A DNA stretch of 64,000 bases from Paragordius varius (GCA_964247055.1 OZ176052.1:1178001-1242000), one strand, 5' to 3'; positions 11,531 to 28,134 are shown, counted from the first letter of the stretch. Program-made: numbers and translations. The notes: generated from the letters alone by a model not told the origin.

Positions 11531-12601
11531 AGTGAATCCATTAGGTATAATCATAAATTTTACCGGTATTATAAAAAATTTTTCTACGCTTCTACATATT
11601 TTCCACCTCTTTCAGGCTATATATGAATGCCATGCCACTTATTGATTGCGGCAAACCATTTGTTAGATCATTTTCCAATTTCGTTGATGTTATCGAAGTA
11701 CTGCGCGGCGAGGGTGTGCCACATTGATGAGTTGTATTAGTCAAATGGCGCCTGGTCAGGAGACGATGCAAAAAAAGTTTCCTGTCAAAGCGATTTGTGG
11801 TGTCTTTTACGGTTCTGCTGTTTGAGACGGACCATCTTAGCCTGCTTTCTAACCCATTCTGTTGATAAATGCGTAAATTAATCATTTGTTGGCGATAACG
11901 CTATGTCTTAACGCTTTTACCCGGTTTCAAAAGCCTATAATACATAATATCGTTCTGGTGTCAGCAGACATAGATGATTTTTTGGCAACGATTTGATCTT
12001 GGCGTTGATGGACCTTGGCGAGGAAAGCCACGATTTTTTCCGCTTTGGTTCACAAAATAAAGCCATATTTCATCTCTCATGATTCGATGCAAAAATGCTC
12101 TTCGATACGTTAAAACAGGATTCCACAAGTCGATTTTCGATTTTTGATTTAAATTTTGTGCTTTTACCGAATTTTATTAATCTTACCCATTTCTCGTAGA
12201 CGTCTGTTGATTGTTATTTATATATTTAATGTCTCTGCCAATCGCCATGAGTTTCAGTTCAGTCACCATCCAAACTCTTGCATTTGATCGTTGCATTCTG
12301 TATTTTAACAAAGCCAAGTCTCTTTTTTACAATCTAAACGTAATTTTGAAACGGCGCTTCCCATGATTTTATCAATGTAGCATGTTTACATGTTTTTTCT
12401 TCTAATTCCGATAAGTTCTTTTTCACGCACAAAATTCATTGTGTTTACTGAACGGAAAAAAATATGACGCTACCTTTTGGCAGACTTGTGGGTGTTTGTC
12501 GTTTATTATTAGATGAACGAAATGGGGTTTGGATTTAATTTCTGCATACATTTCACTTACGTCCTAAAACCGTTAATAATTTTAACTACGAATTCACCTG
12601 G
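11531..12601 (-). mobile_element. Degenerate mariner (Mos1/mauritiana-like) transposon fossil
   Basis: Minus-strand fragments INRRLREMGKI, AFLHRIMRDEIWLYF, PKRKKSW, YYRLLKPG..RYRQQMINL, WHTLAAQYFD..KWFAA and WHGIH..PER follow Mos1 transposase order, with stops and frameshifts. TA-CCAGGTG terminus at 12595-12603. The other end is uncertain. Confidence 0.85.
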
Positions 12602-13569: not shown

Positions 13570-14559
13570 ATTTTTGTTAAACATATTAATTTTACGCCTA
13601 CTTACACGCAAAAAATTGAAAGCATTTAACTTTTATGTTTTCACACTGATTTTTAGCCATAAATAGTTTTAGTTTTTGCGTTATAACTGTAAGCCATCTT
13701 ACGAGTAATGTGAGATATATATTAGGCATTCTTATAACGTCTTAAAAAATCATATAAAACTTTTCATTTTAAAGATGAATTTTTAATATAAGACATAAAA
13801 ATATGTTTTTGACATCCTTTTAATAATTAAAAAAGCTTGTATTTTAACTAATTAAGAATACAATTTCAAGCAATTATTTAATTTGAACATTATTGGAAAT
13901 AAATAAAATATATTTTATCAGTAATATATAGTTTACAAAAACTATATAAGCTTTATAAGTAAATCATAGTTAAAATTAGACCATAAAAACCCTAACATTT
14001 GCAAAATGTTTATTTAACGATTTAGGCATCCTATGATTACCACATTTTAATTCTGATACATCTAATCTGATACCCACACAGTATGAGTAAAATACAGTGT
14101 TTGCTTTACATTAAATGTTGCCAGATAAGATATGCAGGAAAGAGCATTGTGATTTATAAATCAACAGGAGCAAAGATAGTTAGTCTTCTTAGTTGCAGGT
14201 TGGATATATTAGTATATCCTAATGCGTTTCGTTTTTTTTTGGAATCATCAATTGAATATAATGAACGCGGGTAGTTCAAGAATTGATATACATTGAGTTT
14301 TTGGATCATTTGAAACCGAATAGAGAGTCGGGTAAATGAATATTTCAAAGCTTAGAGTCCATGAACAACCGATTGTATTGGATTTCAGCCAGATATAATA
14401 ACACATTATAATCATAAATAACAAAAATAAGCTTTATAAATACGTTATCTCCTTATAAGTTATTAATCAACAGGAAAAAAAACTATGGGCTTATTATATT
14501 GCCCTTTGATTTATATGGTATCAGTTAATAAAAAAACTAGTGTATACTTACTGATACTG

Positions 14560-15010
14560 TGAATAGGCTAACTAAATTTAATCAACTTAGTGTTATCTAA
14601 ATTTATGGAGATGGCCACGAATCCTGGTTAAATATATTAAATTTTGAATGGTTAAACAACCTTAGGATTACAAAAAAATATTGGTGCGGTTTACAAAGCT
14701 TTCTATTTTCACTTTCTTTAGACGCGAGGCACCAATATTAAAATGCAGAAATATCATCAACTTATCCGCCCTTTCTGGCCAATTCCGATTATCTCAATAG
14801 TCTTGAGCGCCCGAGGATTATGGAATCCTAAAAATGAACGGTTATTTGAACCACCTAATCAAAATGAAAAGCACAGCCGAGATGAGAAAGGATATAGTTA
14901 ACGACACCAGAAAATTCTTTTCTGATAAATTTTTCGAATTTATCAGCGGTAGAAACTATACCCTCACCCGGAGCCTTCTACCTATGCACAGACCCACTAC
15001 GTTATCATAA
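14560..15010 (+). mobile_element. Fossil 3' end of an R2-superfamily (NeSL/Utopia-like, RLE-type) non-LTR retrotransposon
   Basis: Frameshifted composite KYHQL..SIVLSARGLWNPKNERLF..EMRKDIVNDTRKFFSDKFFEFISGRNY resembles the recalled NeSL/Utopia C-terminus (GSWDPxNE..MRKLMVSDT..EHxTGHRQY). Confidence 0.5.
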
Positions 15011-15291
15011 TGCAATATTCATTACTATAAAACTAACTATACATATATCTATATATATATCTATTATGTAATTTTTAGCATATGTCCTATATCTTATATT
15101 CTTATTTTTTACAAAATAAATAACACTGTAACCCAAATTTTGGGGACAAGGACAACACTTTAAAATTTAGCATGTGTCATTCAAACGTTCTGAACTTATT
15201 TTTAAAATGGTTGAAAGTGAATTTTGATTAAGTTAAATTTTGATGATTATACGAGTATATATATTTGTATGAAATTGTCTCCAAAAATATA

Positions 15292-15602
15292 TACCCTTGA
15301 ACAATTCAAATTTACCCCCGAACAATTAAAATTGACTCTTGAAAAATTCAAATACAGCCTTAAAAATAATTTATGTGTTTTCGGGCTGATATAACTCATT
15401 ATTAATAAGAAATGACTTTTGGCATAGTTTATTATTTTTTCAGTATTATATTAATTTTAGACGAAATTTTTTTAAAAATATAAAAAAATATAGGTTATTT
15501 TTAATTTTAAATAACCTTAGGGTGAATTTGAATTGTTTGAGGGTAAATTTGAATTTTCAAGGGTGGTTTGTGTTCAAGGGTGAATTCGAACTGTAAATGG
15601 AA
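15292..15602. mobile_element. MITE family A copy (predates the duplication; counterpart at 21244-21556)
   Basis: 21-bp repeat arrays at both ends; right end CTGTAAATGG. Confidence 0.75.
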
Positions 15603-17095
15603 TATATTGAATGATTCGAAAATTGTTTGAATTTTACTATACGTTTCGCAATATCTTAAAAAATGGCTGGGGAATCGTATTATGGCTTAAGAATTAATAT
15701 ATATTTTGATTTCCCGTTTTCAGAAAATAATTATATTTTTAAAAGTTTTGAATGATAAACCTATAAATAAATAAAAATTAAGGTTGTGTTCTCTCATCAT
15801 CTGCTCTATTGTTAAAAGCTGTCCACTATATTTAAACACAAATATTTATTTAGACTGAAACTTTATTTCCCTCTGTTAGCTTTAGAATTGTTAAATTGAA
15901 ACAACCTGAAAAGTTTCTATGATTTTGGGGCAAACTTATAAATTTGCATTCAATGTTTAGGCGCATTACTAAAAAACGTTTGTAAAAAACTAAATTTTTT
16001 TTACTCAAACTAGGGCACCAAATACTTTTTTGGAATTTTTAATTGGGTTAAAAACTAGCAAAAATATGGATAAAAAGTTAAATGGGTTTTTAACATAAAA
16101 TCACCTGATGAATCGAAGTGAATTTAACAGTTTGAATTTTAATATCTCCCAGCCTAAAAAAACTTAAGAAATATCCATATAAATATAATGATAAATAATA
16201 ATCATTATTTAGTTTTGAGAATTTTGTCCTGCAATATTTATATATATGCAGCTTGTCTTTGATGGTAAAATCCGGCAATAGATCAGTATCTCAACTAAAC
16301 TCTAAAATTAATTTTCCATCATAAAATGTTAATAAAATCGTTCTATATACAAGTTTAAAATTTTAAGGATTAACAAATCCAACCAGTAACAAGACGTTTC
16401 TTGCATTATATTTGGATTTTAGCTAAAAATTATGTTGTATATATTGCTTTTTTAGTAAAATGCAAAAAATAGCATACTTTGACGCCAGACATAAAAATTA
16501 ACAATCTCTATTGTTTGGTTAAAGTTGCATTTTTAATATCATTTAATGTCTATATATCTTTTTTTTACAAGACATGTTAAACTAAGGTTTTATTAGATAG
16601 ATGTTATCTCAAGATAATTTAAGCTTATCAATTCCAATTTTTTTATGGCTCAATAATTTATGCCTAAATATTAGAGTTTTTCCAGCTTCACTAAAATGTT
16701 TGTCAATCTTACCATGAAAATTTAGTAAATTCCCATTTGATGGATCAATATTATTATTATTATTATTAGTGCCTTCTTAGTAAGTTTAAAATAGGTCAGT
16801 TTTGCCAATAATGAAATTGGAGGAATTATAAATTTTTTCCAATAAACACGACCAATATTTTTTTATATCTTTATTGGTAAATTAGGATGCTAAATTTAAT
16901 ATATTTATACATTAAATTGGGGTATTTTTAACATAAAATTGAGAATTATATGTTGTCAAAAATACCTTTCCTCATGTTAATTTACTGTAAATTGGTATAT
17001 AGACAATACAATACAATAACCCTAATTTTTATTTAATAAATTAGCTCTCATATTCAATAAATATATGGATATATGCTAAATGTATATAAATCGGA

Positions 17096-19851
17096 TCAAA
17101 TAGTTGATATTACACTAACAGATGGGATGACATTTTTTTCATTCATCGCGTTTTCAGTAATTTTATTATCCATTTCAGTTGCCAATAAAGATTCATTTGA
17201 TGTTAAAAGAATATTATTTTTATTATCTCCATTAATATGTGTTGATGAATCCATTTCTGTAGACAAAATATTTCCAATGGAGTTTGAACCTTCAACCAAA
17301 ATTCTTAAGCCATCGTTGTTTTGATCACTTTTACCAACAATATTTAACCTAATAGGTTGGGGGGCAAAACATGAAACCAATATTGTGATTAAAAATGGCA
17401 TTTTCGAAACGAATGCAAAAATATTAACTTATTATACGGCTTATACAATTAAAATAAAATTATACCGACAAAATGCGAAAATTAAAAAAGAAATAAAAAA
17501 CAGCCATACTTTTTACATAAATCTATAAATTAACGTTAAAAAAATGTGGTTGTCTTTTAAATTATTACGTTTTCTCTATATAATTTTAAATTTTACTGTA
17601 AATGCAGTAATTTACAGTATTTTAATATATAATTTACAAAATTTAATTTCTCAAACAGCTATGTTGTGCATAAAATTCAAATTTTTAATCCATTGTTATT
17701 GAAAAATTTAGTTAATCAAATCCTATAAATTTAAAATATTTTGATCAATCAAAACCCAAAAAGTATAATCTATATAATATTTGGTTACTTTTTCATTTCG
17801 TCAGTCGGGTAGGAATCTACCATTGGTGACATTAATTTTTTGCTTTCTATTCATATATGTTTTAATTAAAGTAAAATTTATGTGTAATTTATCCACAATT
17901 TATCACATTCTACAAATGAATGATATAATTTTGATTAAAAAAACAATTTTTTTTGACTCTTATGATTTAAAAAGTATTTTTTTATTTCAATATTCTAATA
18001 AATCAAAAAATGCCGATGCAGTAGGTATTACGTATATAAATCGTTGACAAATAAATCATTAATACGATTAATTAATGCTAATGTAAAAAATATCTCTTTT
18101 ATTGTCATATAAAAATTCAATTTACGGTTTAAATAAAGATAAAGAAATAAAAACATTATAAAATTAGTAAAACCGATATAAATTTTTTTGAAAGTTGAAT
18201 CTTTTTAGTAAACAAAAATCCTATAGACCTTTTCCCTCAAGATTTTAAAACTTGTGTATATAAAAATAGTAAAAAACTTACTATTCGACAACGTTATCGA
18301 AGAGAGTGTCATCATCCCAGCTTTGGACTGTGATGAATCATTTAGATCGGGGAAATTTAACATGCTTGGAGAATTAGTAGTATTATTAGAATTATTAGCC
18401 TGATCAGAAGACAGCACACCAAGTTTAAAGGATTGCGGAGTTAGTAAGCCAAAACTACTTTTACAATGGTAGTATTGATTATTAGCACATTTTTGCAGTA
18501 GTACCCGTTTATGATATAAACTATCACTGGAACGTAATTCATACATGGAACACAAATTATATATGGTATCAGGGTTAGCTAAATCAGTATAGCCTGTACT
18601 ACTATTGGAATCTAACTCGGTTTCAAGCAAATCTATGGCAGATTGCAAATGTCCAGAATATAAATGCGTTAGGGCTATATTGTTAAGTGCCTATTCATTC
18701 CAGTGCAAAACAAAAATATAGTAAATAATAAACAGTAATAAAAATCGAAAAAATATGGTGTATTCTGCCTATCATATCGAATGATTTAAGACACCGAATA
18801 TTATTACAAGAAGTTTAAACATTAATTTTGCACTGCCAAATTATACACCATAAGCTGTATACGTAAGGTATAAGAAGGCAAAGTGAATCAAAGATTGTTA
18901 TCAATTTTATTAGTCAATAATAAATACCTAATGTTGTAAAACAAAGCGGATTACACGAAAAAGAAAATAAAATCTTCGCAATAACCTTTATGTATAACAA
19001 CTGACAAATAAAGTCCTATTATTGTAACCTAGTGTAGTGTTGGGTATGATAACTTCTGTTAAACGAACAATAAAAGCCAAAACTGGAGGCCGCAAAAACA
19101 ACTAATTCGCAAATAGTTGTTTTCACAAGGGGGCATACAATAAAAACTTCGCTTCAACTTTTTTTACAGCTAGTATTCAGATTATAGTAAAAGTTTGAAG
19201 ATAATGCACTCTGGTCACCACTTACTTAAACTTGAACTTTACATATTTAAAACTATCTTTTAAAAATTATTGTATTTAATATAAAGAAAACCATATTATA
19301 AAAAGATTATTTTAACAAATTAATTAGCTCATACCATGTACTACGATTCAGATTTCCCCGTAACAATTTTTTTATGATAAAACTGCGCATACTAGTTTAT
19401 TCTACAATCTACATGTGGTGTATGTTATGAGATATTAAACGGCCAAAAAAATTAAATGTCAGACAGTGGGCATAAAAAAATTTTGGTGTTTCAAAATGTT
19501 TCACAAAAATATTCCAGTTTGGTTTTTATTATATATATATATATATATATATTCCAATTCTTCAATAATTTCAAAATATTTTATTAAAGCGGGCTCTCAT
19601 TTTCCTTGTGAAACCATGACAATTAAATTAAAAAGGCATCAGTTTTAAAGGGTGATAGATTTGAATACATTAAGTATCTTTAGACGAGACAAATTTATAC
19701 ATTAGATTTGAATACAATTTTGATGACACCTTAATATATTTGAATTAAAGTATTGTATCAATTTTGTATTTAACCTGCACACGTCGTTATTTTACCTTGG
19801 TTTAACATGAAAATTTTTTATTTCACAAAATATTGTATATAAACATTGTAA

Positions 19852-19894
<43 letters not shown>

Positions 19895-20419
19895 TTTGCA
19901 ATTCAAATTGCCCTTAAACAATTCAAATACACCCTTGAACAATTTCACCCTTAAACAAATCAAATTCACCCACAAATAAAATATAAGTTTTTTAATATTA
20001 AAAATTACCATCAATATTTTTATATCTATTTTTAAAAATAAACATTTTGTTTTAAATTAAAATAATACTGAAAAAATAAAAAACCATGCCACAAAGATAT
20101 ATTTCATATTTCAAAACATAATTTGCTTTAGGGTGAATGTGAATTGTTCGACGGTCATTTTGAATTGTTCAAGGGTGAATTTGAACTGTAAATGGTATGG
20201 TTTAGTTTTCGATTTACAACAGAGGAGAAAAAACAATCGATTATTATATACATACATATATTATATATATATATATATATAATTACTTACAATGCTTTTG
20301 TATGGGGCATATTCAGTGAAAGAGTCATAGAAATAGGCTCTGGCTTCATCAAACACATTTTGAGTTAAAGCTAATAATCCCTTATGCATGGCAAACGTTG
20401 CTTTCCAATGCAACAACAT
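17096..20419 (-). CDS. Duplicated TRAPPC12 3' exons forming an open N-terminally truncated ORF; complement(join(17096..17348,17789..17846,18282..18690,20291..20419)), 282 aa
   Basis: MLLHWKATFAMHKGLLALTQNVFDEARAYF | ALNNIALTHLYSGHLQSAIDLLE..TIYNLCSMYELRSS. All splice sites and phases match the full gene. An in-frame TAA lies immediately before the ATG. Expression is not demonstrated. Confidence 0.6.
17447..17598. mobile_element. MITE family B (CAGT-type) degenerate copy; counterpart at ~23345-23562
   Basis: AAATTATACCGACAAAA left half and GGTTGTCTTTT..TTTTACTGTA right half, as in 50974-51249. Confidence 0.55.
19890..20197. mobile_element. MITE family A copy specific to duplication unit 1
   Basis: Degenerate left end TATCATTTGCAATTC after a (TA)n run; right end GAACTGTAAATGGTA. 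Confidence 0.75.
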
Positions 20420-20519
20420 TTATTTTTGGTTATTTTCTTATGATAAGCAAAAAAACTAAAATCCCTTTTATATGCTATCTGTTAACAAAAAACTAGTGTA
20501 TACTTACTGACACTGTGAA

Positions 20520-20986
20520 TAGGCTAACTAAATTTAATCAACTTAGTGTTATCTAAATTTTATGGAGATGGCCACGAATTTTGGTTAAATATTCCAAATT
20601 TTAAATGGTTAAACAACCTAAGGATTGAAAAAAATATTGGTGCGGTTGTTCAAAGCTTTCTCTTTTCACTTCTGTTTGAACGCGAGGCACTAATATTAAA
20701 ATGTAGAAATATCATCAACTTATCCACCCTTTCTGGCCAATTCGGATTATGTCAATGGTCTTGGGGGCCCGCGGATTTATGGAAACCAAAAAACGAACGG
20801 TTATTTGAACACCACCTAATCAAAATGAAAAACACAGCTGAGATGAGAAAGGAAAAGATAACGACACTAGAAAATTATTTTCTGATAAATTTTTTGAATT
20901 TATCAGCGGTAGAAACCTGCTCCTTACGAACAATTCCCTATGCACAGCCCCATTACGTTATTATAATGCAATATTCATTACTATAA
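20520..20986 (+). mobile_element. Duplicated NeSL/Utopia-like retroelement fossil (includes the 146-aa ORF 20546..20986)
   Basis: Copy of 14560-15010; DLWKPKNERLFEHHLIKMKNTAEMRK; indels differ from the other copy. Confidence 0.5.
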
Positions 20987-21243
20987 ATCTAACTATATAT
21001 ATATATATATTATATATATATCTATTATGTAATTTTTAGCATATGTCCTATATCTTATATTCTTATTTTTAACAAAATAAATAACACTGTAACCCAAATT
21101 TTGGGGACAAGGACAACACTTTAAAATTTAGCATATGACATTCAAACATTCTTTCAAAATGGCTGAGAGTGAAATTTTATTAAGTAAAATTTTGATGATT
21201 ATATGCATATATATATTTGTATGAAATTGTATCCATAAATATT

Positions 21244-21556
21244 TACCCTTGAACAATTCAAATTTACCCCCGAACAATTAAAATTGACTCTTGAAAAATT
21301 CAAATTCACCCATAAAAATAAATTATGTGTTTTCGGGCTGATATAACTTATCATTAATAAGAAATAACTTTTGGCATAGTTTATTATTTTTTCAGTATTA
21401 TATTAATTTTAGACGAAATTTCATTTAAAATATAACAAAATATCGGTAATATTTAATTTTAAATAACACACTTGGGTGAATTTGAACTGTTCGAGGGTAA
21501 ATTTTAATTTTCAAGGGTGGTTTGTGTTCAAGGGTGAATTTGAACTGTAAATGGTA
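21244..21556. mobile_element. MITE family A copy
   Basis: Counterpart of 15292-15602; ends GAACTGTAAATGGTA-TA. Confidence 0.75.
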
Positions 21557-22991
21557 TATATTCAATGATTAGAAAATTGTTTGAATATTACTACATGTTT
21601 CGCATTATATTAAAAAATGGCTGGTTAATCGTATTACGGCTTACGAATTAATATATATTTTGATTTCCAGTTTTCAGAAATTAATTATATTTTTAAAAGT
21701 TTTGAATGATAAACCTATAAATAAATAAAAATTAAGGTTGTGTTATCTCATCATCTGCTCTAATGTTACAAACTGTCCATTATATTCTTTAAACAATATT
21801 TATTAAGACTAAAATTTTATTTTCTTTTGTTAGCTTTATATAGAATTGTTAATATGAAACAAAGTGAAAAGTATCTATGATTTTGGGGCAAATTTATAAA
21901 TTTGCATTCAATGTTTAGGCGCATTACTAAAAAACGTTTGTAAAAAACTAAAATTTTTTCACTCAAACTAGGGCACCAAATACTTTTTTGGAATTTTTAA
22001 TTGGGTTAAAAACTAGCAAAAATATGGATAAAAAGTTAAATGGGTTTTTAACATAAAATCACCTGTTAAATCGAAGTGAATTTAACAGTTATTTGAATTT
22101 TAATATCACCCAGCTAAAAAAACTTAAGAAATATCCATATAAATATAATGATTATTTGAGAATTTTGTCCTGCAATATTTATATGTATGCAGCTTGTCTT
22201 TGATGGTAAAATCCGGCAATAATATGATTAGTAGCTCAACTAACTCCAAAATTAATTTTCCATCATAAGTTGATAAAATCGTTCTATATACAAGTTTAAA
22301 ATTTTAAGGATTAACAAATCCAACCAGTAACAAGACGTTTCTTGCATTATATTTGGATTTTAGCTAAAAATTATGTTGTATAATTTATATATTGCTTTTT
22401 ATAGTAAAATGAAACACAAAAAATAGCATACTTTGACGCCAGACATAAAAATTAACAATCTCTATTTGGTTAAAGTTGCATTTTAATATCATTTAATGTC
22501 TATATTTCATATTTTTTTACAAGACATGTTAAGCTATGTTTTTATTAGATAGATCTTATCTCAAGATAATTTAAGCTTATCAATTCCAATTTTTTTATGG
22601 CTCATTATAATTTATGCCTAAATATTAGAGTTTTTCCAGCTTCACTAAAATGTTTGTCAATCTTACCATGAAAATTTAGTAAATTCCCATTTGATGGATC
22701 AATATTATTATTAATAGTGCCTTCTTAGTAAGTTAAATATAGGTCAGTTTTGCCAATAATGAAATTGGAGGAATTATAAATTTTCTCTAAGTAATTTTAA
22801 GATGGTAAAAAGATTTTTATACATTAAATTGGTGTATTATTAACATAAAATTGAGAATTATAAAAAAATCTTTGTTTATGTTATACTGTAAAATGGTATA
22901 TAAACAGAATACAATAACCCTAATTTTTATTTTAAATTAGCTCTCACATTCATTAAATATATGGATATATGCTAAATGTATACAAATTGGA

Positions 22992-25900
22992 TTATATAGT
23001 TGATATTACACTAACAGATGGGATGACATTTTTTTCATTCATCATGTTTTCAGTATTTTTATCAATTTTATCCATTTCGGTTGCCAATAAAGATTCATTT
23101 GATGTTAAAAGAACATTATTTTTATTATTTCCATTAATATGTGTTGGTAAATCCATTTCTGTAGCCATAATATTTCCACTGGTAAGTGTGATAGAGTTTG
23201 AACCTTCAACCAAAATTCTTAAGCCATCGTTTTGATCAATTTTATCAACAATATTTAACCTAATAGGTGAAAAAAACTTTATTGTGATTAAAAATGGGAT
23301 TTTCGAAACGATGCAAAAATATTAACTTATTATACGGCGTATACAATAAAAATTGAAATTTTACCGAAATTAGAAAAACAAAACAAAAAGACAACCATAC
23401 CTTTTTCTTAATATCAACTTCTACATAAACTATATACTACGAATATGAAAAAAATTATTGAAGATGTCATCCAATTACACATAAATCTATAAATCTAGGT
23501 TTAAAAAATATGGTTTTCTTTTAAATTTTTACGTTTTCTCTATATAATTTTAAATTTTACTGTAAATGCAGAAATTCACAGTTTTTTAATATACATTTGC
23601 ATAATAATTTGATATAAAATTTAAAATCTCACACAACTATGTTGTGCATAAAATTCAAATTTTTGATACCATTGTTATTCAAAAATTTAGTTAATCAAAT
23701 CATATATATTTTATAATATTTGGATCAATCAAAACCCAAAAAGTATAATCTATATAATATTTGGTTACTTTTTCATTTCATCAGTCGGGTAGGGATCTAC
23801 CATTGGTGACATTGATTTTTTGCTTTCTATTCATATATTATATTTTAATTAAATTAAAATTTATGTGTAATTTATCCACAATTTATCACTTTCATCAAAT
23901 GAATGATATAATTTGATTAAAAAAACAAAATTTTCTGACTCTTATGATTTAAAAAAGTATTTTTTTTATTTCAATATTGTAATTAAACAAAAAATTCAGA
24001 GGAGTAGGTATTACGATTAATCAGTAAAAAATAAATCATTAAAACAATTAGTTAATGCTAATGTAAAAAATATCTCTTTTATTGTCATAGAAAAATTCAA
24101 TTGACGGTTTAAATAAAGATATAGATATATAAAAACATTATAAAATTAGTTAAACCGATATAAATTTTTCTCAAAAGTTGGTTCTTTTTTACAACAAAAA
24201 TCCTATAGACCTTTTCTCCTCACTGTAAAATTTAAACTATAAAAAAGTATGCAAAAAAACTTACTATTTGACAACATTATCGAAGAGATTGTTATCCCAG
24301 CCTTGGACTGTGATGAATCATTTAGATCGGGGAAATTTGACATGCTTGCAGATAAATTAGTATTAGCAGTATTATTAGAATTATTAGCCTGATCAGAAGA
24401 GAGCATACCAAGTTTAAAGGATTGCGGAGTTAGTAAGCCAAAACTACTTTTACAATGGTAGTATTGATTATTAGCACATTTTTGCAGTAGTACCCGTTTA
24501 TGATATAAACTATCACTGGAACGTAATTCATACATGGAACACAAATTATATATGGTATCAGGGTTAGCTAAATCAGTATTACCTGTATTACCAATATTGC
24601 CGCTATTGGAATCTAGCTCGGTTTCAAGCAAATCTATGGCAGATTGCAAATGTCCAGAATATAAATGCGTTAGCGCTATATTGTTAAGTGCCTATTCCAG
24701 TGTAAAACAAATATATAGTAAATAATAAACAGTAATAAAATTCGAAAAAATAAGGTGACTACCTACCATATCGAATGATTTAAAACGAAAATACAAAAAG
24801 TTTAAACATTAAATTTGCAATGCCAAATTATACACCATAAGCTGTATAAGTAAGGTATAAGAAGGCAAAGTGAATCAAAGATTGTTATAAATTTTATTAG
24901 TCAATAATATATGAGTGAATACCTAATGTTGTAAAACAAAGCGGATCACGAAAAAGACAATGAAATCTTCTCATTAACCTTTATGTATAAGAACTGGCAA
25001 ATAAAGTCATATTTCTTGGGAATACATTTGTTAATCGAACAACAAAATCCAAAACTGGTGGCCGCAAAAACATTTAACTCGCAAATAATTTTTTTCACAA
25101 GGGGGGTATAAAATCAAAAATTTCGCTACATCTTCTATTACAGCATATATTTAAAAGAATATAGTAAATTTCGAAGAACAACCCTTACTTAAACTTGAAC
25201 CTTACATATTTAAAAGTATTATTTAAAGATTATTGGATTTGATATAGAATCATCTTATAAAAAGATTAAATTAACAAAACAATTTGCCCTAACCATGTAC
25301 TATTCAGATTTTCACGTAATATTTTTATGATAAAACTGCTGCTCATACTAGTTTATTCCACAATCTACATATGGATGTTAGTAGATATCAAACGGCCAAA
25401 GATAAATTAAATGTCAGATCAATGTGCACATAAAAACTTTGATGTTTTTTAAAATGTTTCGAATAGTTTTTAATTATATATATACCAATTCTTCTAAAAT
25501 TATAAATATTTTATTAAAGCGGGCTCTCATCTTCATTGTGAAACGAACCAAAAATTAAAATTAAAAAGGCATCAGTTTTAAGGAAACAAAAAAACAATCG
25601 ATATTTGAGAAGTAATATATATACCATTTACAGTTCATTCTTGAACAATTCAACACCCTCTAACACTTCAAATTCATCCTAAAATATATTGTGTGTGTTT
25701 TAAGATTATAAACCTTTATTTTTTTATATAAGATTCTGTTTAAAATAATAATTATGATAAAAAAATAATAAACTATGTAGTAAAAATTTATTTCATATTA
25801 ATGATAAGTTACATTAGCCCAAAAACTCAATTTATCTTAAGGGTGAATTTAAATGTTTGAGGGTGAATTCGAACTTTTCAAGGGTGAATTTGAATTGTTG

Positions 25901-28134
25901 AAGGGTGAATTAGAATTTTTTGAGGGTAAATTTGAATTGTTCAAGGGTGAATTTAAATAGCAAATGGTATATATATATTACTACGTACAATGCTTTTGTA
26001 TGGGGCATATTCGGTAAAAGCGTCATAGAAATAGGCTCTGGCCTCATCAAACACATTTTGAGTTAAAGCTAACAATCCCTTATGCATGGCAAACGTTGCT
26101 TTCCAATGCAACATTTCTTTTTGGTTAACTTTTTAAATTTATATATAGTAAAAATGATATTATACGGACAAAAAGTAAAAATATAAAGACAAATATTTTT
26201 TTCTAAAAGACAACCAATCATACACACTTTTTTAAATAATCTAAATTTAATCATAAAAGCTATTTTTAATATAAAATAGTATTGTGTTACCAATATACAT
26301 CTCTCTACTAATCCATACTTTGCAATTTTTAACAATTAATTATTTTAAAAATTAGAAATTTAAAAAAGATGGTTGTCTTTTACAAAAAACATTTCTCTTT
26401 ATATTTTGACGTTTTGTACGTATTACTTTATATAAATGTTATTAAATATTGTTGCAATTAAATTATTTAATTACAAAAAGAAATAAAACTAATGTATCAA
26501 CTATTAATTGTGGTTTAAACGCCTAAATAATTAATAAATTAAAAATCATTCATAAAAATAAAATTAATAAATTAAAAATTATTTATAAAAATAATTATTA
26601 TTATCGATGTTTTACTTAGAATATTTAGAAAAGCCATTAAATTTTATTTTATTGTTCCTAAAGATACCTTCAGGATTCGGTTGATTGTTATATGAAATTT
26701 TGTATTGTTTTTCCCATTCTAATTCTAATGCAGATAATTTTGATTGCGCCAAGGTTAAGTTACCTAGCTATAAAAAAATTAAAAAATCCTTATAAATATT
26801 TAGAAAAAAGGAAAACAAAATATATCCAAATAAAGAATTATTTTGAAAAAAAAAACCTTAATTAATATTCTAATGGTGAGAAATGAACTAAATAAAATTT
26901 GTCTGACAAATAAATGCGTCGTAGTTTTATAAGTTTTATCAATTTTATTTTCATTCTCTGGTGGTGTATTGATCAAAGTTTTTCTATAACCAATTAATTC
27001 CTTCAAACATTGTATGGCATTTAAATAATCATTGGAAGCAACGTAACAAGCACATATAGCTAAATTAAGCAGAAATATTCTCTGTTCCCAAATTATAAAC
27101 ACATCGCGATTTTCGATTGGAATGTTGTCGTCCAATTCGTTATTGCGTTTAAGTACTGAAACCACCTAAAATATAAAAATAATTGTGATAAAAAAGAGGC
27201 ATGAACTTAAACCATTAATTATTATAAAAGAATTTTAAGCAGTTTAAAATAAACATCTTTACAATGTTAACCATATAATTTTTTTTCCATTTGAACACAC
27301 CAAAAAAAGTATAAATTTGGATTTTTCAATAAGGAATAGATGACATTTAATATATATATGTATGTTTCTTCATAAATTTTAGGGTTAATTTATTTATATT
27401 AAACTATTTATATCTGTTTTTAAAAATGCGAATACTCTAAATTAAAAAAATGTTAGTTTCTATCATTAACAGAAAATTTAATAAAAATGTTGATTTAATT
27501 TTAAGCCAAACCTTTTGAGTTTCCCGCAAAAGATATTGTAGCCTCTCGAGAGCAACATTTGCCGATTGACTTTTATATAATGGTAAAACAGCATATAAAT
27601 ATCGCAGGGTATAGGGTAATTGTGTAACAACCAAATTTGTTTCACGCAATTTATTGTCATTATTATAATTAAAATTATCTATGTAAATTAATACAACACG
27701 ATTAAAACTTGAAAAACTGTTTATATAATATTCGGCCGCATTGAAATCTTGTATTTTGATGTGGAGAATTATTTTCAAAGTTATCAATGGAATCAAACCT
27801 TTTGGGTCGGTATTTTCCGAAGGTGCTAAAATCATGCTATCTAACATTCTTTTAAAAAAATAAACTTAATTTGTTTATAGCTGCTATATAATTAGACGAT
27901 GAGAGTAATTGTTGAATATTTTGGTCTTTTAGATCACTTAATATTGCAAAGCGATTTCTTGCTTCGGTTTCACCCAATTCATGCCGTATAGCGTTAATTA
28001 GCAAATCCCCCTAAAAATAAGAGCTTAAAACTAACCAAATTAATTATGCTGAGGTTATTAAAATAGATTGTTGATATATCATCGGGCAGATCCCAAAGCT
28101 TCTCAAAATTTAAATCTGAACTGGTTAAAATCAT
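22992..28134 (-). CDS. TRAPPC12: Trafficking protein particle complex subunit 12 (TPR protein). Exons: 27512..~28134 (two apparent +1 frameshifts), 26857..27165, 26668..26767, 25989..26128, 24265..24691, 23769..23826, 22992..23259. 5' end uncertain.
   Basis: GDLLINAIRHELGETEARNR..QQLLSSSNYIAAI, LPYTLRYLYAVLPLY..ALERLQ, WEQRIFLLNLAICACYVASNDYLNAI, LGNLTLAQ, MHKGLLALTQNVFDEA, ALNNIALTHLYSGHL and YNLCSMYELRSS match TRAPPC12 in order. GT-AG phases were verified for all six introns. Confidence 0.88.
25622..25969. mobile_element. MITE family A copy specific to duplication unit 2
   Basis: TATACCATTTACAG left end; about five 21-bp units; CAAATGGTATA right end. Confidence 0.8.
26146..26435. mobile_element. 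MITE family B copy in a TRAPPC12 intron
   Basis: ATTATACGGACAAAA..AAAGACAAATATTTTTT..GACAACC mirrored by GGTTGTCTTTT..GTTTTGTACGTATT. Confidence 0.65.

Follow-up and report, generated by a model that had tools for sequence, protein, structure and literature searches.

A 5'-truncated tandem duplicate of the TRAPPC12 gene in Paragordius varius and its intact reading frame

A segment of ~5.9 kb is present as two tandem units in a 64,000-nt window of the Paragordius varius assembly (GCA_964247055.1 OZ176052.1:1178001-1242000; all positions are counted from the first letter of this window), each unit consisting of ~2.6 kb of 3' flank and the four 3'-terminal exons of a TRAPPC12 orthologue encoded on the minus strand. 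One unit forms the end of the parent gene, and the other carries a copy with an intact frame, which is best explained as a 5'-truncated gene fragment without a promoter of its own. The reading that we favour, with a little more confidence than doubt, is that of a real, possibly polymorphic partial duplication, the units of which descend from divergent working alleles or still exchange sequence with them. To explain the clean frame, it is simpler to suppose that the copy descends from a working allele than that it has gained a new function.

Tandem units and their junction

The units were delimited by self-BLAST of the window and global alignment at 14510-20432 (unit 1, with the truncated copy) and 20467-26127 (unit 2, with the last four exons of the parent and the same 3' flank), and showed 85–93% BLAST identity, gaps counted, to each other. 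A search of the whole 110.6-Mb assembly found two copies, both at this locus, and the window contains no N. All three introns are present in the copy and alignable to those of the parent, which rules out a processed pseudogene or retrocopy.

The 34 nt between the units (20433-20466) were shown by local alignments to match, with gaps, the flank right outside unit 1 (14509-14452), and the breakpoint adjoins 20432 at a 5-nt microhomology (ATAAC/TTAAC). The junction couples non-homologous positions, the end of the flank and the edge of exon A, without any N, and has diverged from its counterpart. Since the joined ends are non-homologous, meet at a microhomology and are diverged from the counterpart, the duplication was taken as real in the assembled haplotype, and an assembly artefact, in which two divergent haplotypes of one locus were placed in series, is very unlikely; stitching of haplotypes would not give a junction of this kind.

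In Drosophila, partial duplicates of genes in tandem have been catalogued, among them young genes that are chimeric or 5'-truncated. In the present case, likewise, the unit is a few kb long, the breakpoints lie within a gene and in its flank and are joined at a microhomology, and the truncated copy keeps its introns and 3' end; the case differs in being known here from sequence alone, and in that the divergence of the units may predate the duplication. A 5'-truncated partial duplicate lying behind its parent is of a known kind, and what is new is that it concerns TRAPPC12, in a gene whose C-terminal tail is unusual. The 5.9-kb unit, with its readable microhomology junction, could serve as a handle on how such copies arise.

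Parent gene and truncated copy

The parent was compared with P0001, a 409-aa protein of the horsehair worm Gordionus sp. with the NCBI name 'trafficking protein particle complex subunit 12-like'. An exhaustive search with a 142-aa upstream exon gave two matches, one of them P0001 at 36% identity, and tblastn of P0001 on the window matched residues 36-83, 95-193, 209-242 and 330-394 in order, from 28010 down to 24473, with residues 330-394 matching exon B of both units. The upstream TPR exons of the parent (26615-28010, minus strand), collinear with residues 36-242, are missing from the copy. Its last four exons, A-D, lie within 22992-26129 on the minus strand (26129 or 26117 to 25989; 24691-24265; 23826-23769; 23259-22992), the portion of exon A that matches the copy frame being 26114-25989. 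For the copy, exon B' matched residues 330-408, the last ~80 residues of the protein, at E = 1e-18 and 43% identity, and exon A' matched residues 297-321 at E = 1e-4. Because of these ordered matches along a named TRAPPC12-like protein, the parent is, as judged by sequence similarity, the orthologue of TRAPPC12 (TTC15/TRAMM), the TPR subunit located at the vertex of TRAPPIII in metazoans, and the copy corresponds to its last TPRs. Overall, collinearity with P0001 extends over residues 36-408 for the parent and over residues 297-408 (last TPRs and C-terminus) for copy exons A' and B'; everything before these, roughly 290 residues of P0001, is missing from the copy. With two units found and the parent collinear with a TRAPPC12-like protein, the partial tandem duplication of TRAPPC12 proposed in the initial annotation was borne out.

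In both units, the frame continues for ~155 codons past the P0001 stop, across the remainder of exon B and then exons C and D, producing a tail of ~155 aa after the canonical C-terminus that is rich in Asn, Ser and Thr; P0001 has no such tail. The exons, searched singly against Pfam, gave no significant match, P0001 itself matches TPR families, and the look-alikes of exon B in the protein atlas are eukaryotic TPR fragments. No match was obtained in a word search with the exon B' ORF, nor in Rfam over 13.5-29 kb. A PDB sequence search with exon B and one upstream exon was likewise blank, which fits the cryo-EM map of TRAPPIII (PMC8204870): TRAPPC12, which together with TRAPPC13 is at the vertex where the arms of TRAPPC8 and TRAPPC11 meet, was not modelled in it.

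The copy consists of four minus-strand exons, and there is nothing upstream of exon A' in unit 1. Exon A' (20291-20419) contains 43 codons from the ATG, including one TTG codon more than the parent, and ends in a GTAAGT donor. Exon B' (18282-18690) encodes the last TPR, the canonical C-terminus (..NLCSMYEL..FKL) and the start of the tail, exon C' (17789-17846) is 58 nt long and free of indels, and exon D' (17096-17348) ends in a TGA stop, the equivalent stop of the parent being TAA. Joined, these exons give 849 nt (282 codons and TGA), beginning at a Met codon internal to the parent, so that the intact 282-codon frame described in the initial annotation was recovered in full. The annotation was also right that all splice sites are kept, as 6 of 6 internal sites are intact in both copy and parent, and a poly(A)-like signal follows at 17037-17029. 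The frame sits in DNA in which a stop is expected every ~12 codons; for exon D alone, 85 open codons have a chance of 5e-4.

At the 5' edge, alignment of the exons confirmed that a TAA codon (20420-20422, minus strand), GAA in the parent, directly precedes the ATG of the copy. The parent has two phase-compatible acceptor candidates for exon A, 12 nt apart; in the copy, the first lies outside the breakpoint, and the second is lost (AG to AT). Both the TAA and the loss of the second acceptor candidate result from one change, G>T at 20422, which bars in-frame use of the copy by upstream exons, whichever acceptor the parent uses.

A different route to expression would make the copy a live, junction-born gene, with a transcript starting in the flank, a short 5' exon spliced from 20508 to 20436, and a selected 282-aa product. 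This product would comprise the last one to two TPRs and the tail, might act at the TRAPPC12/TRAPPC13 vertex of TRAPPIII as a modulator or as a competitor of TRAPPC12, and may belong to a gene still segregating, that is, a new gene caught at birth. If expressed, it would be a dated, junction-resolved case, from an animal lineage that has been little studied, of gene birth through partial duplication in tandem. The intact frame where stops are frequent, and the retention of all splice sites and of the poly(A) signal, argue for such a gene, which we nevertheless regard as unlikely. The 71-nt interval proposed as its first intron (20437-20507, minus strand; GTAAGT at 20507-20502, AG at 20438-20437) is present as annotated, but did not originate at the junction: the flank of unit 1, where it is not duplicated, contains this GTAAGT..ATAAG pair as well, 100 nt apart at 14551..14452, and both ends of the 71-nt pair are on the flank side of the breakpoint. 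The proposed intron is thus plain inherited flank sequence and not a product of the junction. The region proposed as promoter showed no recognisable element in Pfam and repeat comparisons. The label of 'retroelement fossil' given to the sequence holding the donor found no support, as the opposite-strand ORF (20546-20983, plus strand) matched no Pfam family; part of this ORF is ~70% like a unit of undefined nature that is repeated every ~20 kb on contig C7. In addition, one and a half TPRs without the remaining solenoid would be unlikely to fold stably.

Indels, substitutions and coding constraint

Between the exons of copy and parent there are seven indels: 3 nt in A', 12, 9 and 3 nt in B', and 3, 12 and 6 nt in D'. 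All seven are multiples of three, compared with 20 of the 74 non-coding indels in the same alignment (Fisher p = 2.6e-4), in agreement with the earlier observation that exonic indels keep the frame while those of introns are arbitrary. At least three of the seven are slips of doubled triplets (TTG TTG, ATG ATG, AAC AAC), and such slips tilt the lengths towards multiples of three even without selection.

Pairwise dN/dS between copy and parent was computed from Nei-Gojobori counts. Over the whole frame, 24 non-synonymous and 16 synonymous differences give a dN/dS of 0.37 (dS 0.10), composed of 3 and 8 in the TPR part (dN/dS 0.09) and 21 and 8 in the tail (dN/dS 0.67). Non-coding divergence between the units is 6–9% in the flank and 10–15% in well-aligned introns; an intron figure of 18% was rejected, as it was inflated by the poorly alignable, repeat-filled stretch 19101-20290.

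These counts were evaluated under a model of full constraint on the parent and neutral evolution of the copy. The TPR part is too clean for this model (p = 0.003–0.01), and seven in-frame indels have p = 0.0025–0.04, depending on the share of events assigned to each branch, whereas the tail counts are consistent with a neutral copy, and 24 versus 16 over the whole frame does not reject one (p = 0.08–0.27). The coding-constraint signal is therefore real yet modest, and belongs to the pair, not to the copy alone. No close outgroup was present in the searched databases, a word search with P0001 having found P0001 alone, so the changes between the copies are not polarised. Accordingly, of the frame constraint ascribed to the copy in the initial annotation, the pairwise signal in the TPR part stands; it is not assignable to the copy's own branch after the duplication, and the tail looks neutral.

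The same numbers bear on a second reading, an old, fixed partial duplicate that is now a slowly decaying pseudogene, with the apparent constraint arising from the parent branch, triplet slippage and small numbers. The neutral divergence of 6–15% between the units suggests age, the triplet slips and the whole-frame counts are as this reading would have them, equal branch shares still leave a 4% chance of seven in-frame indels, and the stop codon or lost acceptor at the copy's 5' edge is in keeping with decay. It is contradicted by the TPR part, which rejects a neutral copy, by 282 AT-rich codons without a frameshift or stop, and by the mosaic haplotypes and depth pattern described below, which point to ongoing exchange or polymorphism; we consider a fixed pseudogene improbable. 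The live gene, for its part, gains from the seven in-frame indels, from the low TPR dN/dS, and from four changes that neither the parent nor the other haplotypes share with the copy, all of which are silent (p = 0.002 if neutral), but a unit that was until recently a working allele would be expected to show each of these constraint signals just as well.

Further haplotypes and origin of the copy

Short read contigs from four runs were compared with the locus: X1, probably from the source sample, X4 and X5, from a second individual of the same study, and X3, a run of low depth labelled as another organism. As the depth of a contig does not measure copy number, depth figures were treated as weak evidence. 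X1 contained three types of exon A at similar contig depth, that of the copy at 221 and a third type, differing at 20336A, 20345C, 20363G and 20375C, at 175; an X1 contig at depth 379 fits the parent and third types together. These depths suggest, weakly, three copies in the diploid source animal. The presence of three types in X1 again argues against haplotypes assembled in series, as two haplotypes would give two. In X4 and X5, contigs share the indel states of the copy: the extra TTG in exon A and, in exon B, neither the 12-nt nor the 9-nt insert, along with the 3-nt state. Their match stops exactly at 20432, followed by 45 letters unlike the junction, so that copy-type exons seem to occur outside the junction context.

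Differences among the haplotypes affect 2–4% of exon positions, compared with 4.6% (39 of 840) between the units. Those in the TPR part, at seven distinct sites, are all synonymous, and the three non-synonymous differences are all in the tail. That the other haplotypes are about as different from one another as the two units are, with silent changes only in the TPR part, was counted in favour of an allelic origin, as was the lack of clear constraint on the copy's own branch, seen in the neutral-looking tail and in the stop or lost acceptor caused by G>T at 20422.

In X1, unit-specific contigs of both units have depths near 200–220, and some contigs in the same stretch 415–466; the read contigs total 170 Mb, compared with the 110-Mb assembly. 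Taken at face value, the first contrast is the half depth that the initial annotation had set beforehand as evidence for an artefact, and the second, which marks a very heterozygous genome, was likewise counted for it; half depth is, however, expected for any haplotype-specific word in a genome of this kind. The pattern fits haplotype-specific depth in a very heterozygous animal, and, on the same weak evidence, would also fit a duplication on one haplotype only. The copy may thus be missing from one haplotype of the sequenced animal, which would weigh against a live gene.

The tandem segmental duplication of ~5.9 kb, its ends joined at the 5-nt microhomology, took in the 3' flank and the four final exons. 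Under the favoured reading of divergent working alleles, the units would come from two alleles of a very polymorphic species that both worked and had already diverged; by an alternative route, unequal crossing-over or gene conversion would have kept up their exchange with working alleles. Working alleles would differ at about one in ten silent sites, and a duplication between homologues would start with differences that had already passed selection. The open frame, the splice sites, the in-frame indels and the mostly silent TPR changes would then be inherited, and, because of their inheritance from working alleles, the differences between the units would have been screened in the full-length gene and not in the fragment. 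Such an origin would explain both the mosaic third haplotypes and the copy-type exons off the junction, and the only change that would be disabling to a full-length gene sits at the 5' edge of the copy, as would fit the start of decay. We infer the allelic origin of the units, the heterozygous state of the duplication and the lack of function of the copy from this combination of features.

Several observations were counted against the allelic origin. The structure of the second haplotype was not directly seen, and no listed contig was shown to span 20432/20467. The seven in-frame indels and the 3 versus 8 changes in the TPR part are also expected of a functional copy. Finally, intron divergence (10–15%) exceeds the exon differences among haplotypes, so the duplication may be old. 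Where the two units of a duplicate were working alleles, the duplicate seems constrained from the start, and caution is advisable in a very polymorphic genome, in which a duplicate may look 'constrained' from its first day.

None of the runs found to contain the locus is recorded as RNA; presumed RNA runs of the species contained next to no words of the locus, those shared with the parent included, and were uninformative either way. The ending of several contig matches at 20294, considered as a possible sequence difference, was rejected as the edge of a masked (TA)n repeat (20245-20293). A very abundant repeat with a 21-nt period was seen among the read contigs.

C-terminal tail of the two TRAPPC12 copies

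In the truncated TRAPPC12 copy and in its parent alike, the minus-strand reading frame extends past the canonical TRAPPC12 C-terminus (..FKL) by a tail of ~155 codons, which is encoded by the end of exon B together with two further small exons (tail-coding stretches 17096-18420 in the copy and 22992-24420 in the parent). The tail is rich in Asn, Ser and Thr, and comparison of copy and parent across it gave a dN/dS of 0.67. Both window copies carry the tail, whereas the closest named homologue, a 409-aa TRAPPC12-like protein from the horsehair worm Gordionus sp. (P0001), lacks it.

Repeats and mobile-element-like sequence

A GGGTGAATTTGAATTGTTCAA-like motif with a period of 21 nt forms arrays at 15491-15587, 19900-20198, 21250-21560 and 25832-25970. 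Words of this motif reach a depth of 10^5-10^6 in the read contigs, which marks it as a satellite or MITE family of extremely high abundance, and it swamps the joint listing derived from those contigs. Part of the duplicated 3' flank (20684-20916) is ~70% similar to a segment that recurs every ~20 kb in a tandem array on another contig of the 110.6-Mb assembly (G000:C7:8516541-8735333), the array unit containing ORFs of 128-220 aa; searches of the window segment against Rfam and Pfam gave no match. By eye inspection only, two minus-strand ORFs at 11592-12128 resemble fragments of a transposase of the mariner type.

Contigs assembled from sequencing reads

Contigs from X3, a low-depth run under another organism label, matched the intron of the copy and the flanking sequence without any difference (18345-19237, 22293-22938) at a depth of 3-5, and differed at 4-11 positions in other places. 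These matches reflect either library-to-library carry-over or the presence of the same species within the X3 sample. Full-depth contigs from the probable source sample, X1, contradicted the assembly at 22605, 22702 and 22735-22738 (2 nt missing, TATTAT inserted, and two substitutions), which may be minor errors in the assembly's consensus where the DNA is of low complexity.
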